A DNA stretch of 64,000 nt, from the NCBI GenBank assembly GCA_021613535.1, contig CP075492.1:8618001-8682000 (forward strand). The letters are read 5' to 3'. The stretch is from Adineta vaga. Taxonomy: Eukaryota; Animalia; Rotifera. Below, one piece after another: positions 94 to 20,029 of the stretch. The notes beneath the pieces are model-generated. The model ran no database searches and had not been told where the DNA came from. It saw only the letters and a list, made by a program, of their open reading frames with translations. The position numbers and the translations under genes are program-made. The first letter of the stretch is position 1. Each line of letters begins with the position of its first letter.

Positions 94-3000
94 CGTTATC
101 GACATTCGCTTCGTCCAAGCATACGACACCTGTATAACCAGGTATACAATTACAGTAAGGTGCACCATCATGCTGACTAATAATACATCTTCCATAATTG
201 CAATTGACATTTTCACAGGAGTCTGTAGAAATGATCAAGGTGATTCAAAGTCAAACAAAAAAGAAATAGATTTTTTTCTCAAAAGAACATGCATTTTTTG
301 CTTTCTTTTCAAATAACATCATTCTTCTCATTTCCTTTGAAAAAATATGACAAAACATCCCAAAGAAATACAAGCCACGCGTGCCTAACTATACCCACAC
401 ATACCATCGGATTCATAACAATTCGGTCCTCGAAAACCTGGTGCGCATTGACACGCAGGTTGATTATCCTGTTGAACCGAACATACACCTCCATTGTAAC
501 AAACAAAATTTGCACATGGATCGATTTGTCGATCGCATGCTGCTCCTTCATAACCTCGATGACATTCACATCTGTATGATGTGCCTTCGTTGATACAAGT
601 ACCATAATTGCATGACACTCTAGCACAAGCGTCTTTGCAGATTAAGAGAAAGAAGAACAAGAAAAAAATTAAATTAAATATACGATATCTAAATCTAATT
701 ATCGAGTTCTCGGGGCAATACTAGAAAATACTAATGTACTACAACTAAACAGATATAAGATAATAACAGCAATTCGAACTAGTAACAAATTTTTCTCTTT
801 ATTTTTCGTCTTTTTTATTTTATTGCTTACCTGTTGGTGTAAGACAATCATGACCTGTATAACCTTGATAACATCGGCAAACAGCTGAACCACGTTCAAT
901 TTCACATCGGCCCTGATTACAATTAACCCGTGCACATGGATCTAGACAAAGTAAATAAGTGTCAAATTTAATCGGATTTTTTCTAGCCAAAATTTTCGAT
1001 ACAAGCTGATTAGAGAAAGAACTATTCTTCGTTCGTTACATGAGATACTCTCCAAGGTAAGTCATCATATTTTTAAAAATTGACATTTCTATTTTATTTT
1101 CATATGCATTTATATTTATGTATCAATGATCACGCATCTTTCCCATTATGCAAATTGAAGGGTGGTGACCAATGTAATTTGAAACAGAGAGAATGCAAGC
1201 ACACACGCACACATTTGACCACATAAGCATGTGTGCGTGAGGACTCTTTCTACCTTTCGATATACATCTGTTCATGTTCAATCAAAAAAAATTTGCATAA
1301 TGTATGTGACCTCTTTCTACGAATATCTATATTCACAAGATGATGCATAATGGTTAGAGACAATAGTAATTTATCACTTGGAATAAGATACTAAATGTAT
1401 TTGAGAAGAAGAGAAAAAGAACGAAGGAGTGACGAGCGCTGCGTAGAGATAAACAATTTTCCTTTCAGATAATAATAACAATGGAATGAAAGCATCATCA
1501 TCATCATCATCATCATCAGCGTTCTCATGCTCATCCATGATAGAATTATGCAAGACTTGCACAATATATATATATATATTCTGTTTTGGTGTTGATCATA
1601 CTCATTTTCTTGATCCACTCATGAAAGCATATGCGTTTGTCTTCTCTACTATACAATAGGCAATTATAACATCTTAACAGTTCAGACACCAAGCATATGT
1701 CTGCCTTTGTTTGCATTCCATCATAATGATCGATGCTGTTACCGGTCTATTCTATCATTCTTCATTCATTCACTCATCCGGTTGTTGTTTTTTTCGAAAT
1801 TCTTTCTTCTATGGGATTGTCGACCTATATGTCTAACAGAAGAGGATAGAATCGGATTGACCGGCAGTTTTACACTGAATGTGATTGATGTCTATCCCAG
1901 AGCGTTTAGATGTTGACGCGTACATTGATAAATAAGTCTCAATTTTCTTGTCTTCTTTTTTTTGTTCTCTTGTCCTTTCTTTTTTTCTATACTTCACTCT
2001 ACTTGTCTAATGGAAGTCGGTTGTGGGTGATTATTGCGTCATCTCTAACCAAGTAAAAGCAAATGAACGCCAAAGGAAAAAGAAACTACAGAACGTGCGT
2101 GCTCTTTTGTTACACACCAATTTGAGTTTCACATCGCGAGCCACCATAGCCCTCAAAACATGAACAATATGGTTGATTGCTACGATCTTTTTGACAAGTT
2201 CCATGGTTGCATTGAAAATTCAAACAAGGATCTGTTGAAACTATCGAATGAAAAGAAAAAAAAGAAAAAATATTAATAATCGATAAACGAAACATGTAAT
2301 TCTCACTATATGATGATAGATTTATTTCTCAAGGTCTTAAAATATCGATTTCCTCATATAGTGACAAATGACAGAAAGATTACAGAAGTTTCTTTTTTCA
2401 TACCTGATTGTTCACAACGATATCCTGTATATTGAGCAGGACAATGACAGTATGCCAAAGTAGTTGGTGTGGCCGGTTGAATACAGTAACCACCATTCAT
2501 ACAATTGATCCTTTCGCATGGTGTCCCTAGAGTAAATACATGTATGTACATTATGAAGTCAAACTCATGTTCATAAAAAAGACGAGAACAAAGCTTTATA
2601 AAAGAATAAATGAAAGAAAAATTATGTATTAACTTACAACAACCAAGGTAACATGGCATCGCTCCCACCGCTTGTCCTTCATATTGAGGAGAAGGTGCTG
2701 GTGGAGGAGGAGGAGCTGCTTCGATCAAAATGATAATCGATAGTAACGAAATCAAGATTTTCATTTTATGTAATAATCAATGTAATAGATTAGAAAAAAT
2801 ATATACGAAGAGAATGTGTGATTCAATGTTGGTAAGAATGAATCATATCACACTAGACGGCGAACGTCGAATATTTTTTTTCTTTTTTTCTACTCTTGTT
2901 TTTTATGCTAGATTCTCTGCGGTTCGTCAAAAATTATCGATGAATAAGGTAGTTGCCGTTGCCTTTGACTTTTTTGTATCGCAGAAACCAAATAATGTCA

Positions 3001-6000
3001 AATGATGATGATGATAATGATGATGGTAGCAAATGGAAAGAAGACAAAGAGAAAAAAAGGGTCTCTTGCCAATAATATTTCGGAGATGCGACGAACGGAG
3101 TTGGCTTGATGATGGTGAATATCGTTCGAGCTTGTCTTTTTTTCTTCTCTTCTTCTTCTTCTTCTTGTTCTTGTTCTTCACAAAGTAATAGTAATAGGCA
3201 CACGAGAAGGAAAAAGAGACAGAAAGAATGGCGTAAGTTGCAAACAAACACCAAACCGCAAAGCGACGATGACGATGGCAGAGAAGGAGAAAAAAATATA
3301 TTTATACGAAGAAAAATCTACGATGAATGAATAACACAGGAAGAAAAGATGTGAGAGTGGACCAATATAGTAATATCTTGCATTAGTAAGAACAACAACA
3401 TCAACAAGATGAAAGAAGATGTTGTATTAACGTCATCTCGACTGCATTCTCTTGCTTTCTATCGGTGCTAGTAATGCTGAGCTTACAAGTGGCTGTCCTC
3501 ATTGTCGTCCCTTTCTTATTTTTTTCTTCTACTCTTCTACATACATAGATTGACTATGCGCTCGCACACACGTACGAACAGAAAAGAGAGCAAGAGAAGA
3601 GAAGAGAAGAAGAGAAAGAAAAAGCAAAGAAACAGAAAAAAAAATGCTTGTTATTAACATAAAAAAAAAGTACACGAACTAGACAAAGAACGATCGTGTA
3701 GTGTGTGTGCTCTCGTTCGAGTTCGGATGTTAGTAATAACGTTTGCTGTAGAAGAAAAAAAGAGAAGTACATCGACAAAAAAAAGATTTGACGCTCGCCC
3801 GTCAATAAGAAAAAAACAAGAGTTTGTCAAAATGTCGATCTAATCGCATCTGTGATTTGGTTTTCCTTCCGCATCAATACGATTCTTTTTATTTTCATAC
3901 AAAGAATTAATTAAAATGAAATCATCCTCTAAATATGGCAATGATCAGAAATCGTCTACACAAATAGAATATAGACGATGATCAATCCTATCGAACAAAA
4001 ATAAATAGAAGCTCATCCAAAGCGAGATGATGCAAGAGAATATGCATATATATATATAGATGTATATAGGCTTCTCTTCATCGCCGCCTGGTCTCACGTC
4101 TAGAGCACGTATCATCTTTTTTTTATGCTAATTGACTGTGGATATATATATTGCATATGTGTATGAATGAGTGTGTTCGAACGCAAGCATAACTTGGATA
4201 GAAAAAATATGTAACTCGTCAGTCATTTCGAGATAATATGATTAAACCTTAGGTAATGTACATAGACATGAATGATCGATAGTGACGGTCACACATATAT
4301 ATATATATATATATATATAAATATCTATCATGATTCATTGTCTTTCAAATTTATTATAGTCAGGAAAAAGAAACATAATCTTAGTATTACAACTTACGTT
4401 GAGGTATGGCTGCATGATTATTCCATCCAACACTTGGATCGTATTGGACTAATGAAGGATTACGAATGCAATTTTGTATTAAATTCTCACGACGATTATC
4501 CGAAATGAGCACGACCTAATTAGAAAGATTTTTTTGTTGTACAATATTTAAAAAGTAAGAAACGAATTTCTAATTCATTTTCTACTTACATCTTGAACGT
4601 AACCATAGAAATTTGCTCCACATATTTGAAGTTTTCTATCTCCGAATAAACTAAAGTATCCAGTTAGATTGGTATAATGTCGAGTTTCATAATCAAATGT
4701 CAAGTCGAGCTATTAAGATAAAATAAGAAGAAGAAAAATGCTAGCTATCAATATGATTGATTATATACTGTATTTGATGTTTTTTGACACTGTAACGTAT
4801 GCCATTGATCACCGCGAACACGACCAGGAAAATCATAGGTAAAAACAGCAGCACCATTTTGAATTACAAGACGTGGATAGTAATTCTTTAAATATCAAAT
4901 CAACATTGTCTCAAGTGTACGTCTATAAAACATTCTTATCTTTATTTACCTGAAGAACAATTGAAAGTTGAATAGGACCATCTCGTGATAGATATAACGT
5001 AGAATTAGCTGATGTAGTAAATATAGTAAAATCAATTTGTTCACGTTGACCAGCTCCAATTTGCGTTGAATAACGAACTAAACCTGTATTACTCATATCA
5101 ACTGATGTCGGTGCACAAACCATGGAACAATCAGATTGACCACAGAATTGTAGTGGTCGAATACTATTGCCGCATGGCATTTGTCGATCACACATTGTTC
5201 CTTGTTGATAGAAGCAATCATATCGATCAGCTTTCAGAACACCTTCCGGTAATAATGGTTGACGATTATATGATACATTAGCAAAACAACCAACAAATGG
5301 GTTATTCGCTGTATCAGTCATTAAACGATATGGACCACCAATTGTTACTACATCGAAAAACATTGGTGAACGTTCGGGAATTGGAATTTGTGTTGAACGT
5401 TTATCGATTTGTACATAAATATTATCATGTGACGTTGTTTCAGGAATTTGTCGTGTTACTAATATTCGATGTTGTTTACCATCATTAATCGTTTGATTAT
5501 CATTGTAAATAAGTTGTGATGATTTATTAGATGGTGAATAATATTTTAATTGTAATTTACCATCTTTTAAACCAAGAACTAAACCACGTTGATCATCATT
5601 TGAATACATTGAAGTAATTACACCATTGGCTGACAGAGTTTTAATTGGCATTTGACAAAAACGAAATTCATCATTCGGTTGTACTTGAAGTTCAATAATA
5701 TCACGACGATCACGCATAGAAAAACTCACATCAGGTGCAACATACGAGATAACATGTTTACCTACAACAGAAAATTATCTAATTGTATTTTATTCAAAAT
5801 AAGATTAATGGTTGATTTGATTAACTCGTGATTCCGAAATATTCTTCGCTTTTTAGAACATATTCAAATTTAGTTAATTTGATAATCCTATATACGATCG
5901 TTTGATTAGAAATGATTCGATTTCATTGGATTTACTTTCGTCTCGAATTTCCTTGCAAACAAAACAATCGTCAATTTAAATGAAATCTGAGAATAACAGT

Positions 6001-9000
6001 TGTTTCTTTTGTAATGTAAAAGAAAAACACATTGTCCTTCGATAAATATTACTTGAAACTCTTTAATGATCAAACAAATTTTATTTCATAGCAAATATCT
6101 ACTCTCGAGTTTATTTTAAACTTGGATGTTTTCATTAAATTCAATAAACGAATAGTTGATAGTAAGAGTTCTCAATGTGTAAAATCAACGAACTTGACAA
6201 GAGTGCTCTTGCTTGAAGGAACTATTTCTCTAAAATAAGTGCTTTGTACACACTTGATTTACTATTCAACATTGTCAACAATGATTGACGAAATAAACGT
6301 CGACAATAATTATTATCTTTATTTTCAATAAAATGAACAATGTCTCATCAAATAGCGCATTACACATTTCATGATTAACGATAGAATCAGAAGATCGAAT
6401 AGATCTGTCGATGAATTGAATTCATTCATGTGTGTATCATAGAGAGATTAAGAGAAGGATGTTCAATCTAGATTTACTTACGTCCACGTTTGGATAATTG
6501 ACAAACGTTGGTCAATCGTCCAGCATGATGAATATGATCTAATTTAATGATAGCTCGTTCATTTAACATGACATTTCTAATACAACCAACAAAATTATCT
6601 CCATCTAACATCGGATATTTTTCTTTAAGAAAACTATCCAATTGACCAATATAAATTGTGTGAATACGAAAATTTTGAGTAATCTTTTTCATAACAACAT
6701 TTCCATCAAGTTCAACAATGAAATCATTCTTATTGATTAATTTTACTACTAATTCATGTTCACGTCCATCATTAACTGGAACTGTATTATTTAAGAAGAT
6801 TTTCATACGTTTTTTATAATTATCATCAAATGTCAAAAGTAAACGTGCATTGTAAATACTTAATGTCATAAAATTTTCATAAGTTTTATCAGTTAATGAA
6901 CAAATAATACTATTTGCTTCTTGTGTATAGAATAGAATTGAAAATAAACGAAAATCTTCCGAATAATCAATTGGAATAATCAATGGTCGATCATATTCTT
7001 TAAATGATATGATTTGATCAATAAAAATATTACTTGTTGAAAGAATTTCCGTTGTTTTCAATACAATACTACTCGATGGACATTGTTGTCTAGTCAATGG
7101 TAAATGTTTAAATGATATGATTTGATCATTGTATGTGACATTTTCTAAACATCCAATAAATTGACTACGTGGACCAAAGACAAACTTATCAATGGTTAAT
7201 TTTAATGAAGATAATTCCATAGAGATTTTCTTTGCAGGATGATAACTATTCTTTTTCATTATCCATGCTTCAACATTCTTATCTACACGTTGTAAATAAA
7301 CAGCATAGATATTGCCATCATTAATAGGTTTTTGTTCATCATTCGATGAAATTCGTTGAGCTTGTTTATCACGAATAACTAATGCTAAGTAACCATCGAC
7401 ATCAATATTTAAACTAATTGAACCAAATTGTACAAGTGTACTAACATTTGCACGTGTACGAAAAGAAAATGATAATGTATTGAAAGGTGTATTAATTGGT
7501 GATGGAATTATAATTTCACTATTATCTGTTCGAAGAAAACCAATGGTTTGTCTTGTTTGAGATGATTTCATATCGACAACAACGAAAATTTTATCATTCG
7601 ATGAAGATATCGATGATATCAATGGTGTTGATGATTCTTTAAGATTTTCTTCATTCTCATCGGCAGTATCTTCTTCACGAAGATTCAATGATCGACCTGA
7701 ATTACTTACTAGAATCTAGATAAACAAGAAGAGAAGAAAAAAAGAAAATAAATGATCATAATCAATTCTTTTCAAATAACTCATATGGATTCAGTTGCAT
7801 TAAATATTTAAAAGTGAAGTATTTATCCTTAAACAGTTTCTTTGATTTTTGAGTGTAGTGCTATTTCTTTTTGAAATATACAAAGAAGGAAGAGCCGAAG
7901 GGCTGAAAACTTTTAAAATTCTTTAACTGAAATGATCAAATCAAAAGCTTTTCTAAAGTAACTTGCACATCTTCTTTATTTATACATATAAAGTCGTCTA
8001 CCATCTTTCTATTCTTTTTTTTTTCTTTTTCTTTTTGATCGATGACTGTCTGAACATTGTCTATTAATTATATCCATTATCTAAAAAGTATGTTCGCAAC
8101 ATACAATTTTGACAGGTCATCTGAATTGTTTCACATAGACACCTATGCATTTACATTTGATAATGGATATGAAAAGAAAACCTATTTATAAATAATCATT
8201 AAACATTCTCATCGATTCGAGTCGAGTCGAACTTCTTTTTCTTTTTTATCATCATCAAAGAGAAGAAAAAAAAATAAATTAGATACTACTACAGTCGAAA
8301 TATTGATATATACGTTATCAAAGAATAATTTTCTTTTATAAAATCATAATGAAAGTTGTTTACTGATGCAGAAGATGTACAATTTGTAATTATTACTCGA
8401 GATTGACAATCGATAATATCTCATTATTTATAAATACGTGAAGTTGAAGAAATTCAACCAGTACGCTTGAAAGATATTTCAAAAGGCTGTCTATTGTCGA
8501 GACTTAAAAAACATCACTCACAAATGTTTTATCAACAAAGTCAAAATGTACAAAAGATGATTATCGTAAAAACTTATGAGGCATATTATTCAATGCGAAT
8601 TCTATTTTCAACTTACATCACCAAGTTTTCCATTAAAATCTCCATTAGGCACTGGTGTTAATTCTGCTCCAATGAATATGTTCGCTTTTGTTTGCCAACC
8701 ATCCGGTAATTGCACATCAGATTGTTCGATATTATCAAGTTGAAATCGTACCTAAACATGCAAGATGAATAATTAGTAACCAATGACTTAAAAAGAATAA
8801 ATAGCATTACTTTTCGATCTAATCGTTCAATATTCATTTTGTGCCATTTACCATCATTAATATTAATTGGATTATTCTCTTTTGTTGTTAGAATAACGTC
8901 AGGAAGGTCATCTTGTGAAAAAATAATTTTCGGTTTTCCATCCTTAAAAGAAAAAGAAAAAAAGCACCATAAATCTTCATTTTCTCATTCAATTATAATG

Positions 9001-12000
9001 CGTTTAACAAACTTCAATATCGAATACATAATAAATATTATCATAAGCAAATCCAGCAAGAATAGTCGTCGTTGGAGATGATTGTTGTTTAGATAGGACA
9101 GAGAATGAAATAGCTTCAGATAAAGTATAATCTTCTTCATCGGTTAGATATTTCGTTCGAACATTGAATGGTAATGGATATTCAATAACCGTTTTAGGTA
9201 TTAAACGATTACTATTTAAGGATGCTTCGGTAAGAGTACCACCTAGACATAGAGAAATATGTATGCATAAAACATAAGTATGAATAGAAGATGTCGAAAG
9301 TAGAAGTCTTGTGTCTGACTAATTTTCACTATTAAAGAAGAAGAAGAAGAAGAAGAATAAAACGAACATTTATTATTCCAGTTGAACTCTTGCTTAAGAA
9401 TGTGTGAAGATGAAAATGCATCAATGTCTCAATTCTTGTATATTTATTGAGTTCAAGAGTCTTACCAGTGGTAAAAATCTCATTGAATGATGATGATGAT
9501 GATGGCGGTGGTGATGATGTATTATTTATATTATCATCATTCAACAAGTTTAAATGTTGCTGTTGACATGGATATATTTGTAAGGAAAATAAGATCACAA
9601 GGAATGGAAATTGCTTTGTAAACGACATCAATTTTGATTAGAAATATGTAATGATGAGATTCGTGATTAGTATATATTGATCATTCAAAGGACTTAACAT
9701 CGCGCACATGAGTGATGTGTGAGAGCGCATCTATGTTGAGAGAAAAGAAAAATATATAGATGTTTTATCTCTCGGTCTCTCTCGTTCTCTCATTACCGTT
9801 GTGTAGGCTAGTCGATGACCATCATCAAAATGCAAAAAAAGAAAGACATAGAGAGAAAAAGAAGAGCAGAAAAGAAAGATTTCTCGTTCTTTTTATATTG
9901 GCTAGTGTAAGTTATACACACAGTTCAACATCTTTTCTATGTTGTTCGGTGTATATGTTGTTGGTAGATGAGAATGGATGATGAGGATGGAAGAAGAAGA
10001 GAATGAACTGTGAGTGACGAGTAAAGAAATGAATGTGAGTAAAGAGAAGAGAGAAAAATATTCTTCATTTGAGTCAACGCGAAAAATAAAATTGTATCGT
10101 CGTTGTTAAAGCAGAAAGAAAGAAAGGACAATAGTAGTAAAAGCAGTGATGATGGTCAGAAGCATGAAATCGGTTCGTGTCCGTCTTCTTTATGTCTCGG
10201 CGACACACTCTGTACATGTGTGTGTGTATGTATGTATATGTATATATATATATATATATATATGTGTATGTATGAGTAAAAGAGCGTGAGCATCGAGAGT
10301 GAAATTAGTTGTCGCCGGCTGATGCATGATTTCTTCTTGATTGAGTTGTCCGACCGAGCAAGATACGAAAAGGTAGAGGGAGAGCATGAGTGTGTGTGAG
10401 GGAGGGAAGCAAGGAAGGAGAACGAGCATATGAAGGAAAAACGGTTCCATTCTAATACTAGTGGACAGTAAGAGTATACAGCACCTTTATTTGCATTGAC
10501 CCTAATCTCTCTTTCTCACTCATATTCGTTTTAACCTTTCTCGATGTCGCGCACACTTGTGCACAATTAAATTCTACATGTATCAGATCGATGAAAGTCT
10601 AGATACATATGTCGCGTGATTGAAAGAAATAATATTTTATCTTAAAATTGATTCAGAAAGAAAGCTTAAGTTTATATTTGAAAATGAACAAAAACCAATT
10701 TTCTTTTGTCAAATGAAGATGAACATGATGCATCAAATTACGAATTCATTCTCGATTTTCCTTCTGTCATGTTAAGAAGAGACACCAAATCATGTCCGTA
10801 GCATGTCTTATGTAAGAACACTTGGGAGAATCAAATACATAACAAAAAGAAAGAAATGACAAGTGCAAAAAGAAACTCTCCAAGGCAGAAGAGTCAATCA
10901 TAATGTCAAAATAAGGACAAGTGAATCGATCAATAATGAAGAAAAGGAACAAGTAGTAGTACTAGTAATTGCACTATGGACTACATCTGATCAAATAAAT
11001 AATTCCACTGTTGTAATTGATAACAAACGATTGCCTTTGTCTATCCCAATTCTATAATTTTTGCCTCATTAGACGCATTCGTCTCTTATTCTGTTCTTCT
11101 TTCATTCGTATAGTGCAAAGGAAATGCATTCCATTCTTACTCTAGTGAACAATAGAAGAATGTTGTAAGTGAGAAAGAAAAAAAAAGAGTAACAATTTCG
11201 GAAACATACTAACAATATTATCGTTTGTAAGTATGTTTGCGTGATTTTCTGCTTAAAGATTACAACATGTGTAAATGACGTAAGAATACAAAGATTCTAA
11301 AACTGTCTTATCCTATCTTTAATCATTGCATGTTCTATCATCTTTCGTCGTTCATAAATTAAGATTTATTGTTTGAAACATGCAATAGCTCTCTCTCTCT
11401 CTCTACATATATATATATATATACGACTGTCAAATACAGTTTACAATTAAAATCATATTTTTATTTCATTATTATTGAAGATCAATCATAATTTATATCG
11501 GTTGCAATGAGTATGAATCACTATATATTCATTTTTACGACTTAGAAAAATACTAATCAATGGAGAAAAAGAAGAAGAAGAAGAAGAAGACGACGTTATT
11601 ATACTAAATATTAGTTGAACTACACTAAATCTCTACACTTACATTGACACATTTCAAGATTTTCAGCAACTCGTTTTACGCGCTCATTTATATTTACAGA
11701 TTTACAACATTCTAACAGTACAAAAAGAATCCAAATTCTCTAGTGAATCCATCTCAAGTAAGGGAATACCTACCAGATGATGGTTGTTCATATGACCAAG
11801 ATATTGATCGAAATGGAACAAATATATTAAATGACAATGATGACGATAATGATGGTTTATTTGATTGATCATAAATCGGATTTGCTGTATAATCTATAAG
11901 CTGTCCGAATAGAAAGATAGAAAGTGTTGATGGTGACCGATAAACAAGATTAATGTATAATGATGTTTCATAAGGGAATTCACTCAATTGTGTACGTAAC

Positions 12001-14944
12001 AGTCCACGATTAAATGGCAACCAAAGATCAAAATATAAACTTGATAATGTCGAATTGAATACAACAAGATAAACATGTATTAATGCATCATGTTTGAAAT
12101 TTTGTTTAAAAATCGATGAAGATTTATTCATAGGATTGATGGAAAAAATAAATGTCAAAGAGAAATCTAGTAGACAAAGAAAAACGAAATATTTCATATA
12201 AATAATCTCATTTCGTCGATAATTACCTATTGAACATTTTGTTAAGTCCCACATACAATTTTCTCGTTGAATATCCATTGGTAAGAAAGTAACAAGACCA
12301 TTTTGATTTACATTTATTCCAATATCTAAACAATTAGAATTAAATCAAATCTAATTACTTTCAACGAAAAGTTCATTACAACCTTTTTTCATAACATTAA
12401 ATATATATGGAGAAGTTCCATATGAAAATGTTGATGCATCACTTTTTGAAATATATTCAACTGAAGTAAAATCAATTTCATATTGAATAAGATTTTTGTC
12501 TAAATATTAAAAACAGAAAAAATCTCTAACATTGTTTCATTTATTATTCATTTCAAGCGTAATCAATTTAATTCGTCAAACGAATGATCATTTCCTTAGT
12601 AATTGAATATGTACCCTCAAGCATTCTTTGTCGTCTTATTTCCATGAAGTAAAAGATCTATTAAGATTACAACATAGTTTTGCTCTTTCTAATTTCATCA
12701 CATCAAATATATTCACACTATAAAGTAGACAAGAAGTATCCTAGTCGACTTTATTCTAAGTGACCATTGTCGATTTCAATAAAAATGTAAAATATAGAGT
12801 TCCGCTCTTCGAGTGCATAAAGACATCCGGATGATTTTGTTTGATGAATTGATCGATCAAAGAATCTTATCTTTTCTTTTTCCGAAAATAATTCGATAGA
12901 AGTTAGAAGTATCGCAAACTGCTCATTTTTTAACAGACAGGAAACAGAAACAAAAACAAGTTTGTTCATGTCAATTGTAAAACAGATTGTCTTGGTTAAT
13001 ATCAGCTACATCGATGATTAATTGAACAAGTATAGACGTATGTGCATTCATTTTAAGTTTTCATTCAATCATTCTAAAGCTTCCTTGTCTATATCCATCA
13101 TATACTAACAAGACTATATGACCCATCAAACTATTTACTTGATCAGTTGATTTAAAAAGAAATGCACTAGTGTTTCTTTCATTGTCTACCTTTGTCTTTC
13201 GATTGAAGATATAAAGAGAGTGAAAACAGTTTAACTTTGTTGCTCCTCTATACTATACAGGTTGAGTGAAGGAAGACGACACACTCGAGAGTCAATCTGT
13301 TCAGTGTTCACACACACACGTATACAAACACATACATATATATACAAAGTGTTCATTATTTTTTTTGTCTCGATCGAACGCTTGTATAGAAAATGTGGAC
13401 ACTCTAATCATAGAGTGTACAAAAGAAAAGGACAAAAAATTGACAACGTAGGTGTGCATAGATGTATGCTTCATCACACATTGGCAGGCGATCATTCTTA
13501 TTATCTTTTCTTAGTCTTGATACATGGATACACGCGAGCAAGTTCAATTGTTCTTTTAAAGTGACATATAGACGAATAGCATATCAAAACAATTAACATC
13601 TACTCGGAAGATCAAAGACTGGTACTATTACAATACTCGTAATAATTATGATTAGCAAGAGGAAATTACTTTACGCATTACTATAACAGATGAAATATGG
13701 ATTTTTTTTTCTTATAGATAGTATACATATATAAACGACTAGAGTAGACAACAACAATAACAATAAAAAAGTTAGTAGTATGATCAACGCGTGTGTATAT
13801 ATATGTTTGCCGTTTAATCTGGTAGACATAACGTAAACATATACAACTGACTGACGGACTGGTTGACTGACTGAACAAGCAGCGTTTCATTAGGATATGC
13901 CTATAGCAGCCTTCCAAACGGTTGATTGCATGCTTTGTTCTGTCTGGTGTTGTCTATGTGTATATATGTATACATCAATTGAAACATGGAATAAGATATA
14001 TGACGCAAAGAGAATTGAAGATGTTGAAAAGATTATCGCCTGACTTCTCAACCTATCATGTATAATGTTCATCAATATGAACAAAAAGAAAAAGATAAGA
14101 TCCATGACAGTTTATGCCTTTAAGGTTACTGTTCACAGTACGAGATTAGATATATATTGTTAATATGTTTTCTTTTACAACATGATGACTTACTCATTAT
14201 AGTCATAATACTACATGTTTTATTGCTACAATCACATTGATATCGTGGTTCTTCATCGACATTTAAACATTCACATGATGAACTTGAACATAATGATATC
14301 TGTTGTTCACATACTTCAGATTGAAAATTGCTTGATAATGATGAAAAAAGTGGATTTTGAATACGTTCAGGACATCCACATAAACCATAACGAAGATTAC
14401 GTACAAAACCTTGAAAGGATGGAAATAAAAATTCACTTGTATGACGTTGTTTCTTATATAAATTCATTGGTAAACCGCCAATATAAACCATTGAACTTGT
14501 ATTTAGTGATGTAAATGGTAAATAATTCAAACTTTTCGATTTAATAATGCGATTTTCAACATTTCGCAATGCAACAGAATAGAGAACAAGTTCTGTAATT
14601 AACGAAGATCGTCGTTTAAAAACGATTTTATACCATTTATCATCATTAATTGAATGATCAAATTGTTGATAAGCTTTGTTATTTCCAAATTTTTGTTCAA
14701 CTAATAATTTTCCTTGATAAATCGAAACAATAATTGAATCCGAATAAAAATTATCATTTGTATAAAAAATTAAACCATTTCTTGTTTTCGTACGAAATTC
14801 AAATGAGAATGAGCCATTATTACACAAATATAAACGTGGATAAATAACAAATATTGAATTTTTATTGTTATTAATTTCATTTGAATGAAAATGAACTGAA
14901 TGTACATATGGAATAATGAACAATAGAATATACCATATACACAT
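94..14944 (-). CDS. Secreted/cell-surface protein with six laminin-G (LNS) domains followed by at least six tandem EGF repeats (neurexin/crumbs/eyes-shut-like building blocks); long isoform, 3' end lies off the window
   Basis: Exons joined in frame at GT-AG sites: 14944-14194, 12499-12383, 12325-12227, 12166-11774, 11711-11643, 9242-9013, 8942-8811, 8751-8617, 7715-6482, 5761-4950, 4885-4769, 4709-4590, 4515-4398, then EGF exons 2526-2404, 2231-2118, 941-831, 632-405, 222-94. Signal peptide MCIWYILLFIIPYVHS. LamG hallmarks: FSFEFRTKTRNGLIFY, INDDKWY, INDGKWH, VNDGREH, INDGKQH, YIGG..FQGFVRNL, FIGCLENV, FVGCIRNV, FVGCFANV. The junctions 11643->9242 and 4398->2526 are inferred from phase compatibility and the absence of a stop. 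Confidence 0.72.
2638..2764 (-). CDS. Signal-peptide first exon of a short EGF-only isoform (or of a separate EGF-repeat gene)
   Basis: ATG at 2764 encodes MKILISLLSIIILIEAAPPPPPAPSPQYEGQAVGAMPCYLGC. It ends at a phase-1 donor T|GTAAGT that is in frame with EGF exon 2526-2404. Confidence 0.8.
9466..9628 (-). CDS. Signal-peptide first exon of an intermediate isoform starting at LamG domain 2
   Basis: ATG at 9628 encodes MSFTKQFPFLVILFSLQIYPCQQQ...NEIFTT. It ends at a phase-1 donor G|GTAAGA that is in frame with exon 9242-9013. Confidence 0.7.
10211..10274. repeat. Compound (TG)n/(TATG)n/(TA)n microsatellite
   Basis: Directly visible. Similar (TA)n, (GAA)n, (CAT)n and (GA)n tracts occur at about 1495, 4295, 11390, 15010, 28470 and 59580. 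Confidence 0.9.
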
Positions 14945-16972
14945 TGTCGGTCTACAATACAATGTAAAAAAGAGTAAATGAGTCTAGAAGATGCATATGA
15001 CTTCAACAAAGAAGAAGAAGAAGAAGAAGAAGAAAGAAATGAATTCTTCGGTCGCGTTCTGCTAATTGTTCAATAGTTTTTCTTTTTCATTATATTGAAT
15101 ATTTGATTCTATAACGACGAATGACAAACTTTCTTTTATAATAAAGCCGACATCGACCTATATGAGGTATACTCGCCGGGATACTGATGTAAAGGAAGAA
15201 AACTGAATAATGTCCAGTATAGAGAAACCCTGGTGAGTCGAGTAGAATAAAGGAGAGAAAAAAGAAAACAATAAGGAACATTTACGTAAATCACCAGTCA
15301 TATCTATCTGTACCCTATTATGACTTGGAAGATCAAGGTAAAAAATCAATGGGGTCTTCTGAACTTCTCCATTCTACTTATTCCTGGACAAATGAGAAGA
15401 GAAAGAGAATCTTTTTTCTTCTCTTATATGTGCAATGATCGAATAAATACGTTCACTCACTCAGTTTCATGTATACATGTATGTGTTTGTCTCTTCTTCT
15501 ATTCTCTTTTCTTCTAGTTATTCTCCTTCTTTTTGCTGTTCAACAATATCCAATAATGCAAGACAAAGAGAAGCGAGAACACACGATATACTTATGTGCA
15601 TAAAAATAGGCCACCGTCGTCGTCTACGGCCATAGTTAATTATTTTGATGAGAACGAGAAAGGACTCAAACGTTGACTGACCATCTCCCTCTCTTCTTCT
15701 TCTTCTTCTTCTTTTTTTTCTCTATCGGCCACTTTTGAACGGTGTTAGAACAACTCAACAACTGTTCATCATTGTTTTATCCTTAGTTGTTGTCTATCAT
15801 TATCATCATTCTCTTCGATAAATAACGCTAAATTTAGAACATATATACACATATACATATCATTAGCCAACTTCTTTTTTTTGTCATCTATACCTATTTA
15901 AATTATGAAGATGATATGTGAAAAAGAGAAAAAAAACATATTTTACTACTAGATGATAGACAAAGATGATGATGATGATGATGATGCATGAAGATTTCAA
16001 AAATAGCTTTGTCTCATTGATCGAAATAAAATGAGTAATTTATCATATGATAAATACCAACTGGTAGATTTAACTGTATTTGATGAAATGTTTTAGAGAT
16101 GAGGGTTGTTTTTTTCTAATCAATGAATTATAATTCTTGCTTCGTTGTCAATAAACAATTATTGATCAAATGGCAGACTGACATGTAGTAATTTGATCTT
16201 GAGAAGATTTACTTGTATGAAAATTTCTTCGGAATTCTGTTAATAGGATATCACATCATTTTATTCAAATAGAAAAATTTAAGCAAAGTATATTAATTGA
16301 AAAAAATCACGATCTATTTGAAGACAATTATATTAGCATCAGGAGATCTCAATGAAACTTTAGAAAGTGAATAAATAATGTCATATGATGACACCTCAAT
16401 TTGTCTACGAAATGATACTTGAATATTCCACGTCACTAGTCATGAAGTATTTCGAATAGAAAGAAGTGATGAACTTTCGTGTTTCTTTGGTAACTGATTA
16501 TATATTGTTTCTATTTTTAACTTGAATTATGATCAAAATAGGCTTGAGATCGTAGCTGCAAGGTAAATGTTGTTACCACCGGAAATAGAAGTTGTAGGTG
16601 TAAATATTTCCTAGTTTATATCAATGAAAGCAAATGTTAGAAGAGACCTTTATGAAATATGACATTTATTGATCGAATAAATCAGAAAAAAACGGATATT
16701 GAAGGATTTTCTAAGCTTTGAGCTCGTTCACAATCAAGGTCATAGATCGAACAACGGAGATTGAATTGATTATATTTATATATACGTTTGCCTATGTTGA
16801 TTGTTTAACTTGTTTTTCTTTCCAGGTAAATAAAAAATATTGAACATCTCTATCTGATTCATTGACAATAAACAACAATATAAATTGTTCAATAATAAAA
16901 AATAGAAATGTTCTTTTTTTTTAAAAATCAAAATCCAATTGTACATGAAGACTTTAGTATAAGATATAAACA

Positions 16973-19055: not shown

Positions 19056-20029
19056 TTACCTCACCGCTTGTGGCATTTTATCATTGAGTAGAAGTCTTAA
19101 TTCATGTTGTGCACGACGCCAATCTTTTTCCGGTTCAAAATCATCAAGTTCAATAATATCGGTTTGTAAACGATCACAATCCGTAATCATTACCGTAGGC
19201 AATGGTGTTGTTTTCAATGATACTAATGGAATACTCGATGATGTCGAGGCACTACTTGACGATAGATAGGTGGCATTAGTAATCTGACTAAATGTTGTTG
19301 TTGTTGATGATTGAGATGACTGTCGTTTTAAATTAACGAAACGATTTGTTCGTGTTTTTCCAACAGATGGTTCATTGACTGGTACAATTATCGATGGTGT
19401 TGGAGTATTTAAATCTGCTGTTGATGATGCAAGTGTCGATTGTGAATAAGCAAAATTTCGACATGCTGGATAATAAAGTAAAGATGCACGCCACCACTTG
19501 CCGATGAAGCTAAAGTTGATCGACTAAATGCTAAATTCGATATTCCAGCTGTAATCGGTAATGATAATTCAAATTCTTCTTCAGGTATTCGTTCACATGG
19601 CGCAGCAAAATGTCGATGTTCATGCGCAGTTCGTGATCGTTCGGAAAGGAATGATACTGAAGTAAAAACACTTGCTTGATCATCATCGTCATCATCTTCG
19701 TCATTATCAGAATTCGTATCACGTCTTAAAGTTGTCTGCATAGGTGCTAATAGAGATGATGGTGGTAACGATCGATTATAGCGACATAGTTTTAGGCTCG
19801 TTTTCTTTTTTAAACGACGAAATGTTTGAATCGATGCAAAAATAAGTCCCATTATTAACCAAAGAAAACATATGGAACCAAATAGAATTAGAAGACGTTT
19901 GAACATACTTGTATAATATGATGAGTCATAGATATGTTCAGTAGATGAGAATGATAATAGAGTAGCATTTGTCGACATTGTCATAATACTTGTTGTAGAT
20001 GAAATAATTAACATTTTATATATGAACAT
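19056..20029 (-). CDS. Single-pass (type III-like) membrane protein with a Ser/Thr-rich cytoplasmic tail; apparent 1-nt frameshift near 19490
   Basis: TM segment LLILFGSICFLWLIMGLIFASI followed by RRLKKK. Protein-like sequence continues in a shifted frame (RASLLYYPACRNFAYSQSTLASS...LLNDKMPQAVR*) to 19056. Confidence 0.65.

Follow-up and report, generated by a model that had tools for sequence, protein, structure and literature searches.

A bdelloid rotifer ortholog of PHRED-1 that probably carries three nested signal-peptide first exons

Between positions 94 and 14944, the minus strand of the window (the entire analyzed stretch of 64,000 nucleotides from Adineta vaga contig CP075492.1) holds the 5′ three quarters of a gene that, judged by its architecture and by a molluscan homolog, is the bdelloid rotifer ortholog of PHRED-1. 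This protein (Pharynx regeneration defective-1; Adler and Sanchez Alvarado, bioRxiv 10.1101/131789) was defined in a planarian as six LamG domains, nine EGF domains, a transmembrane (TM) segment and a WD40 region encoded by a RACE-verified 8-kb transcript, and was found to be confined to spiralians, rotifers not being among the taxa named. The family architecture is thus known; new are two conserved internal exons in bdelloid PHRED-1 that are predicted to encode signal peptides and to act as starts. We consider it probable that the locus is a single gene with three nested signal-peptide first exons (a1, b1 and g1), which would probably, in the manner of neurexin genes, give rise to a long, a medium and a short form. 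A start in a1 (14944) would yield the full form, b1 (9628), located within the a5–b2 intron, would yield a form that lacks LamG 1 as well as the alpha-specific domain, and g1 (2764), located within the b9–g2 intron, would give rise to a LamG-free form comprising the EGF array, the TM helix and the WD40 region. For the long form, we infer splicing of a5 to b2 and of b9 either to g2 or to an acceptor inside g1.

An initial annotation, made from the DNA sequence alone, had pointed to ATG-containing signal-peptide exons at 14944, 9628 and 2764. All are present on the minus strand, and a scan of 20.5 kb of the gene strand singled out exactly these: 44 open starts combined an ATG with a hydrophobic segment, and only three of them, a1, b1 and g1, contained a phase-1 GT[AG]AG donor, compared to none of 11 on the opposite strand. 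The same scan returned one candidate in each of the homologous gaps of three other bdelloid loci, at the homologous place. The phase-1 donors proposed after 11643 (T/GTAAGT), 4398 (C/GTAAGT), 9466 (G/GTAAGA) and 2638 (T/GTAAGT) were likewise confirmed, as were the phase-1 acceptors (..TCTAG/) preceding 9242 and 2526.

The gene continues to the left beyond the window to about G000:C3:8614825. This part adds four further EGF exons and then codes for a TM helix and, in a cytoplasmic region, a WD40 propeller up to the stop codon. The predicted product spans the membrane once with type I topology; outside the cell it carries six LamG domains followed by about ten EGF domains, and its cytoplasmic part contains a WD40 propeller. 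Pfam searches detected Laminin_G in a1, b2–b4, b5 (twice), b6 and, weakly, b6–b9 (E = 7e-4), and EGF or EGF_TEN in six units of g2–g6 within the window and in four further left, in agreement with the six LamG domains and downstream EGF array initially annotated. By inspection, the TM helix was recognized after the EGF units as a hydrophobic segment some 23 residues long ahead of ..ARKC.. (L008:8716-9060), which is kept in D. carnosus, P. laevis and P0042. WD40 and beta-propeller families matched L008:6906-7634 and also P0060 (Pfam), and the last exon was 81–97% identical to those of D. carnosus and A. steineri. A leftward search for a TM helix and a PDZ ligand, as had been suggested, succeeded for the helix, whereas a short PDZ-binding tail is replaced by the propeller and a predicted C-terminal end ..VSVQR. 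The earlier view that the architecture differed from known ones had to be abandoned, since the EGF, TM and WD40 segments to the left of the window place the protein in the PHRED-1 family. D. carnosus (2676 aa), A. steineri (2330 aa) and Rotaria (~2350–2440 aa) have the same order of LamG, EGF, TM and WD40, as do acanthocephalans and Lymnaea; in one instance, an open reading frame of 2061 aa with LamG, EGF and WD40 lies on a single Logan contig of 7.1 kb. Among the matches with a named source, LamG together with a PHRED-1-type WD40 region occurred in rotifers, acanthocephalans and Lymnaea only, the remaining matches being plain WD40 proteins. Family features found here thus comprise six LamG, about nine EGF, a single TM, an intracellular WD40 region with a conserved C-terminus and a combination restricted to spiralians.

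Some 0.5–0.7 kb upstream of the alpha ATG lies a conserved non-coding block (15433–15662) with 78% identity (blastn) to loci L019 and L022, amid sequence that could not be aligned; it is a candidate alpha promoter or leader. Exon a1 (14194–14944) encodes the predicted signal peptide, LamG 1 (Laminin_G_2, E = 3e-16, Pfam) and a Cys-rich EGF-like piece, and ends in a phase-1 GTAAGT donor; its junction was scored, and it is 92% identical to residues 1–252 of A. steineri P0087. Junction scoring also placed a2 (12383–12499; scored against P0087 and P0060 and conserved in L019 and L022), a3 (12227–12325), a4 (11774–12166) and a5 (11643–11711). The a4 domain matched no Pfam family and is present as a single copy genome-wide. 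L019 and L022 share the exact donor at the 3′ end of a5 but diverge in the read-through tails beyond it, and the gene models of Rotaria and A. steineri splice the a5 equivalent to the b2 equivalent.

Conserved non-coding blocks also precede b1 (9657–10583), several with 67–85% identity to L019 and L022; C6, the ohnolog located on contig 6, matches weakly here. The blocks may represent an internal promoter or leader. Exon b1 (9466–9628) contains an ATG, a predicted signal peptide and an N-x-T sequon; A. ricciae P0071/P0001 and the C6-type models P0094–P0099 have it as their N-terminus. Its acceptor exon b2 (9013–9242), predicted to be common to a5 and b1, forms LamG 2 together with b3 (8811–8942) and b4 (8617–8751) (Pfam, E = 7e-10 with A. 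ricciae as proxy). LamG 3 and 4 are encoded by b5 (6482–7715; two Laminin_G_2 stretches, RNA contig 7168–7630), whereas b6 (4950–5761; Pfam, RNA contigs 5373–5753) covers LamG 5, a Cys-rich linker and the start of LamG 6. Exons b7 (4769–4885), b8 (4590–4709) and b9 (4398–4515) are linked by the RNA joints 4769>4709 and 4590>4515. The b9 donor recurs in C6, L019, L022 and D. carnosus as well as in another three bdelloid open reading frames, with read-through tails that vary in sequence and length. Orthologous gene models and homology suggest that a5 and b1 would both be joined to b2 at the present locus and that b1 may be used as a start.

The short form is the one that was observed directly. 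RNA evidence consisted of contigs from four runs, all belonging to one study; such contigs cannot reveal transcript starts. In these runs, the g1 form is transcribed from its own leader, spliced, and the most abundant product. The coding part of g1 (2638–2764) comprises the ATG, a predicted signal peptide, a Pro-rich piece and a ...PCYLGC motif; an in-frame stop lies four codons upstream of the ATG with no AG in between. The junction 2638>2526, anticipated by the initial annotation, was present in contigs of all four runs at a depth of 20–27, about tenfold that of the beta (LamG) exons (2–4). Depth over g1 and its leader taken together was 10–27, and the beta introns had zero coverage in the RNA contigs. 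The transcribed leader (2765–4256) is contained from 2765 to 3128 in one contig together with g1–g3, which runs unspliced upstream to 3128, while contigs of lower depth extend to 4252. Sequence conservation of the leader was found with C6 (3766–2401, 67%), L019 (3625–3239) and L022 (4256–3997 and 3538–3042), and upstream ATGs are depleted, with only one in the 619 nt before the g1 ATG (P about 0.0005). Ahead of a1 and of b1, the ATG-free zone ends after ~50 nt. Because of the depth of the 2638>2526 junction and the unspliced, ATG-poor and conserved leader, we regard the short-form promoter as real; promoter positions are inferred. Downstream, g2 (2404–2526; EGF 1, junction scoring) has RNA joints at both ends and g3 (2118–2240; EGF 2, Pfam) is reached through 2404>2240. 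The loose end of an RNA contig at 2118 equals 912–941 within g4 (831–941; EGF 3, junction scoring and Pfam), followed by g5 (405–632; EGF 4 and 5, E = 1e-8 in Pfam, junction scoring) and g6 (94–222; EGF 6), the last exon inside the window. Run X3 also contained contigs that are unspliced across the 2526 acceptor.

Comparison with relatives supports the internal starts. C6, L019, L022 and D. carnosus each contain counterparts of b1 and g1 that agree in position, phase and donor type; the coding frame of g1 is kept, and neither exon can be entered in frame from upstream. The C6 ohnolog has lost the alpha unit, leaving b1 as its only start, and C6 orthologs in four species likewise lack alpha and begin at b1. 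It is nevertheless conceivable, if unlikely, that the gene has only two working starts, either alpha and gamma with b1 as a conserved yet little-used relic, or beta and gamma with a1 rarely joined. The RNA supports the gamma start alone, upstream ATGs begin 56 nt ahead of b1, and the substitutions in b1 relative to A. ricciae are about half non-synonymous, with no clear bias to synonymous sites; furthermore, the ohnolog manages without alpha. On the other hand, four loci with an alpha unit (A. ricciae, L019, L022 and D. carnosus) also retain b1, complete with its ATG, hydrophobic core, sequon, phase and donor. Some 0.9 kb of sequence ahead of b1 is conserved, and so is the a5 donor.

That the alpha, beta and gamma units form a single gene is well supported, because all three are united in public full-length models from Didymodactylos, Rotaria and Adineta steineri, and because the a5 and b9 donors are conserved in every locus examined while the sequence beyond them is not. 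The initial proposal of one gene with nested signal-peptide first exons was thus strengthened by the orthologous models, the conserved donors and starts and the gamma RNA, but no RNA contig of the four runs joined b9 to any downstream exon, 4398>2526 included, and none fell into the interval 4253–4396. This absence would fit two or three tandem genes, in which secreted LamG proteins (alpha, beta or both) end soon after 11643 or 4398, gamma is an independent EGF-TM-WD40 receptor and the long models are predictor fusions. Read-through stops are indeed present beyond both donors, an AATAAA motif (4355–4350) is located 45 nt after 4398, and the tenfold more abundant gamma form has its own leader. 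As had been predicted for annotators in general, the A. ricciae annotation splits the locus into genes of 272, 124 and 1027 aa, with the beta gene ending at the read-through stop (RKL, stop). We nevertheless consider tandem genes rather improbable: planarian PHRED-1 is a single verified transcript with the same domain order (bioRxiv 10.1101/131789), the Logan contig unites LamG, EGF and WD40 in one frame, and the corresponding intron of the acanthocephalan P. laevis measures only ~70 nt. Moreover, the donors are conserved but the tails are not, and the beta contig (X1 record 4) halts at the 4397/4398 donor with 13 unplaced letters, without continuation into 4396–4331. A single a1 promoter, with the internal exons unused as starts and g1-leader reads stemming from a retained intron of the long pre-mRNA, is highly improbable: contigs are blind to 5′ ends and those of X3 cross the 2526 acceptor unspliced, but g1 and its leader exceed the beta exons in depth while other beta introns show none, the C6 copy lacks a1, upstream ATGs are depleted and the g1 frame is conserved.

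Assuming one gene with three nested starts, the long form might not use the 2526 acceptor. Orthologous models, which are predictions, disagree on the acceptor for b9, some choosing g2 (2526) and others (P0080-86, 89, 90, 94 and 96) a site inside g1, so that transcripts from 4398 may enter the 2764 exon just past the signal peptide. The candidate site (2715–2720, GAAG/CAG/) offers two phase-1 AGs directly after the signal-peptide core, and a phase-1 AG occurs at the equivalent spot in five of five loci; the site scores weakly in a small PWM and is absent from the RNA contigs. Exon g1 would then have a dual use, providing a signal peptide when started from the internal promoter and, in the long form, only the Pro-rich ...PCYLGC piece common to all forms, the acceptor coinciding exactly with the point where the signal-peptide core ends. 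The broader scenario, in which bdelloids independently equipped PHRED-1 with neurexin-like alpha, beta and gamma nested promoters, with gamma as main product and g1 in dual use, is offered tentatively.

PHRED-1 of Schmidtea mediterranea and its lophotrochozoan homologs share with the bdelloid protein a type I topology, six LamG, about 9–10 EGF, one TM, the WD40 region and a strongly conserved C-terminus (bioRxiv 10.1101/131789). Expression in muscle, with a requirement for the patterning of muscle fibres, is a further trait ascribed to the PHRED-1 family. In contrast to the planarian gene, for which that paper describes one 8-kb transcript and nowhere uses the words "isoform" or "promoter", the bdelloid genes have two conserved internal signal-peptide exons as predicted starts, and the LamG-less form dominates the RNA. 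Through nested promoters, neurexin genes express alpha and beta forms and, in the case of NRXN1, a gamma form (Dev Dyn 2022, PMC10084454); each internal promoter has a first exon that codes for an alternative signal peptide and is spliced to the common exons further downstream, giving six, fewer or no LamG domains (PMC10084454). Common to both systems is a LamG/EGF ectodomain. Nested starts, supported here by RNA for the gamma-like one and predicted from conservation and the ohnolog for the beta-like one, would be a further parallel, with the same TM and cytoplasmic part for all forms. However, neurexin follows a (LamG-EGF-LamG)x3 order, whereas here only Cys-rich linkers follow LamG 1 and LamG 5 and the EGF units form one membrane-proximal array after the sixth LamG. 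In addition, the short neurexin tail with its PDZ-binding end contrasts with an intracellular region of ~590 residues (D. carnosus model) containing the WD40 propeller, and the beta-like form would retain five LamG domains instead of one. Convergence is the simplest explanation for the similar gene logic.

If the three-start model holds, a spiralian-only receptor with one form described so far would exist in versions that combine one EGF-TM-WD40 body with six LamG domains, with five or with none, a natural dissection of the role of LamG, and the neurexin style of isoform making would have arisen more than once. The ohnolog pair, one with and one without alpha, offers a clean example of how genome doubling was followed by subfunctionalisation at the promoter level. 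Annotation would benefit as well, since public bdelloid annotations split the locus or merge it without internal starts. Matrix or adhesion genes of other kinds offer a further parallel, for example laminin alpha-3 (LAMA3 A/B forms), where an internal promoter drives a short form that has its own signal peptide and begins in an intron of the long form; the protein families differ, and the bdelloid gene stands apart in its three predicted nested starts and its cytoplasmic propeller. The best solved-structure match of the bdelloid LamG region was Neurexin-1-alpha (E = 4.5e-9).

The gene is encoded on the minus strand of an AT-rich window (G+C ~31%) in a genome of 100.8 Mb and six contigs (G000), and its exons form an alpha block (a1–a5, 14944 to 11643), a beta block (b1–b9, 9628 to 4398) and a gamma block (g1–g6, 2764 to 94). 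Exon limits were set by comparison with proteins of A. ricciae and A. steineri, the closest public ones at ~85–95% identity, a level that places the sequence in the bdelloid genus Adineta. Searches used the exons themselves, with public orthologous models as full-length proxies, and scripts translated only short exon-end joins for scoring candidate junctions. The motifs on which the initial annotation was built were all present, namely three start codons, each leading into a hydrophobic stretch, two TCTAG acceptors and four phase-1 donors of GTAAG type. When 20.5 kb of the gene strand were scanned mechanically, 44 open starts with an ATG and a hydrophobic stretch came up; three contained a phase-1 GT[AG]AG donor, and these were exactly a1, b1 and g1, the three starts proposed. 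The same scan of the opposite strand gave such a donor in none of 11 starts. The observation of the motifs and of three start exons was confirmed. Pfam assigned six laminin-G (LamG) domains, one each to a1, the b2–b4 block and b6, two to b5 and a weak one to b6–b9; exons downstream of them carried EGF domains.

Extension beyond the left edge of the window, as the initial annotation had suggested, uncovered a transmembrane (TM) helix: four further EGF units were followed by a single hydrophobic helix, behind which come the cytoplasmic region, the WD40 propeller and, near window position –3175, the stop. PHRED-1 of Schmidtea mediterranea spans the membrane, with six LamG and nine EGF domains on its extracellular side and WD40 repeats on the intracellular side; it is encoded by one 8-kb transcript verified by 5′RACE, is required for muscle fibre patterning and has homologs in lophotrochozoans only (bioRxiv 10.1101/131789). 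By its domain architecture, which is thus already known, the locus is PHRED-1. The claim that this architecture is unusual falls, and had arisen because the TM helix and the propeller sit outside the window. Neurexin-1-alpha was the best solved relative of the LamG region, yet matched only with E=4.5e-9, and the domain order and tail of the locus do not fit neurexin. With the TM–WD40 part of the Didymodactylos carnosus protein as query, the same combination was retrieved from many bdelloids, two acanthocephalans, Brachionus and the snail Lymnaea, while the remaining matches were ordinary WD40 proteins only. ESM Atlas look-alikes of the cytoplasmic part were discarded, being generic WD40 clusters only.

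Comparison with the ohnolog on contig 6 (C6), two further bdelloid loci (L019, L022) and D. carnosus revealed that homologs of g1 keep the start codon, the hydrophobic core and the small-residue boundary. They also share a Q-[YF]-[DE] motif, terminate in C-Y-x-x-C and have a phase-1 GTAAGT donor, and their indels come in threes. Homologs of b1 likewise keep the start codon, the core and an N-x-T sequon, and end in a G/GTAAGA donor (slash, exon boundary) 130–220 nt before the shared acceptor. In each homologous gap, this exon was the sole candidate returned by the same scan. Both b1 and g1 are conserved as coding first exons. Moreover, neither can be entered in frame from upstream, since each ATG has a stop a few codons upstream and the stretch between the two contains no AG. 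All three start exons have conserved non-coding blocks upstream. Too few sites were available for any reading of dN/dS on b1 against A. ricciae, and a putative bdelloid spliced-leader string had no match near the start exons. New to the PHRED-1 family are the internal start exons, a conserved set apparently specific to bdelloids, and, in the RNA samples of one study, the dominance of a LamG-less form. In the acanthocephalan Pomphorhynchus laevis (L028), an annotated short isoform (P0066, 405 aa) has as its first exon an alternative EGF-like one that lies immediately ahead of the TM helix and encodes no signal peptide, and other annotated isoforms stop before that helix; isoform diversity in the family may extend beyond bdelloids.

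Four RNA runs of that study were mapped on 2050–8049. Their contigs behaved as RNA, with introns skipped and no depth in introns. The join 2638>2526 (g1 to g2), anticipated in the initial annotation, was found in all four runs at a depth of 20–27. Contigs of 744–752 letters comprised g3, g2 and g1 and continued unspliced to 3128; further contigs covered 3184–3689 (depth ~10) and 3701–4252 (depth 3–5), and none in the four runs covered 4253–4396. Beta exons were patchy at a depth of 2–4, with joins 4769>4709 and 4590>4515. In one run (X1), the match of a 277-letter contig stopped at the 4398 donor behind b9, and its 13 extra letters fitted nothing nearby; this donor was thus used in at least that contig. 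Only one ATG precedes the g1 start codon in 619 nt, against about ten expected (P ~0.0005), and this leader is conserved with C6, L019 and L022, the L022 match beginning at 4256, adjoining the upper limit of the RNA contigs. On the basis of depths, joins and leader, the gamma form has its own transcription unit and is the main product in the sampled RNA. Loose contig ends at 3530, 4068 and 7652 resembled upstream exons but were rejected: their sequences match C2:4634.5k and C6:1918.6k, loci with which the window shares only 19–26 nt of low-complexity sequence, so these ends are assembly chimeras. Such chimeric Logan RNA contigs join the gamma leader or exon b5 with G000:C2:4634520-4634748 and G000:C6:1918665-1918694; in this genome, loose ends beside TA or CT runs call for a check before they are taken as splice joins.

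Several observations favour a single gene. In public models of 2330–2676 residues from D. carnosus, A. steineri and four Rotaria species, an a1-type signal peptide is followed by all LamG domains, the EGFs, the helix and the propeller. A 7.1-kb Logan contig, most simply an mRNA, holds an ORF of 2061 residues with the same composition, and in P. laevis ~70 nt separate the last LamG exon from the first EGF exon. The donors after a5 (T/GTAAGT) and b9 (C/GTAAG) are kept in every readable bdelloid locus (the ohnolog, L019, L022, D. carnosus and three further ORFs), and the would-be read-through tails vary both in sequence and in size (3 to >20 codons). Such a pattern is that of a donor in use rather than of a stop codon maintained by selection. 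Three independent genes is how annotators have split the locus in A. ricciae (272, 124 and 1027 residues), as the initial annotation had foreseen, and when the C-terminal 98 residues of the A. ricciae beta protein served as query in a word search, read-through ORFs alone came back and no spliced fragment across the b9 donor. Single-exon word searches were set aside, as they mostly hit prokaryote-style single-exon ORFs on metagenome contigs. Overall, the proposed logic of one gene with nested signal-peptide start exons proved largely right, whereas the joins 4398>2526 and 11643>9242 stand as candidates. Read-through past the 4398 donor (4390–4398) gives R-K-L-stop, identically in A. ricciae, and an AATAAA lies at 4350–4355, ~45 nt past the donor. 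It is conceivable that an intronic poly(A) site gives rise to a secreted protein of LamG domains only; no read-through past this donor occurred in the RNA contigs. A beta terminal exon at the AG before 4247 was dismissed, as one contig extends past this AG to 4252 and C6 shows no conservation there.

As to the acceptor of the long form, the b9 equivalent is joined directly to the first EGF exon in models of D. carnosus and Rotaria (P0091–P0093) and in P0095 and P0098, and inside g1, just past the hydrophobic core, in P0080–P0086, P0089, P0090, P0094 and P0096. The latter acceptor retains a Pro-rich piece ending in PCYLGC, and a phase-1 AG occurs at this spot in 5/5 loci (here GAAG/CAG/ at 2720–2716). 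A small acceptor matrix (16 sites, 88 AGs) favours 2526 (rank 4) over 2715 (rank 23) and 2718 (rank 58), a ranking too weak for choosing the acceptor. Both 2526 and the acceptor within g1 may be used.

The ohnolog at C6:7670575-7682260 is a collinear copy with b1, five LamG domains, g1, EGFs, helix and propeller. The alpha unit is absent from it, and alpha exons are single-copy in the genome. Because both chromosomes share the same upstream neighbour gene (window 19059–19906), alpha was lost from C6. A b1-type signal peptide stands at the N-terminus of the C6-type models (1868–1928 residues; A. steineri and three Rotaria species), indicating that b1 has been the sole start of this paralog since before both genera parted. 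The neighbour encodes a small membrane protein in a single exon (19059–19906, minus strand, and C6:7664043-7665008; ~48% identity). In the A. ricciae model P0070, its homolog is fused to the beta body with b1 skipped, probably a prediction error.

Further short blocks, 70–92% conserved with other bdelloids and partly with C6, were noted within two long introns, in intron a1–a2 (13049–13087, 13264–13459, 13759–13854) and in intron g3–g4 (1119–1305, 1680–1759), with no alignment around them. The blocks in g3–g4 are not constitutive exons, as RNA contigs join 2118 directly to 941. The D. carnosus gene is without the short Cys-rich a5-type exon present in Adineta and Rotaria, and carries an extra exon of ~240 residues (L027:13351-14082; P0060 residues ~460–700) between the a4 and b2 equivalents.
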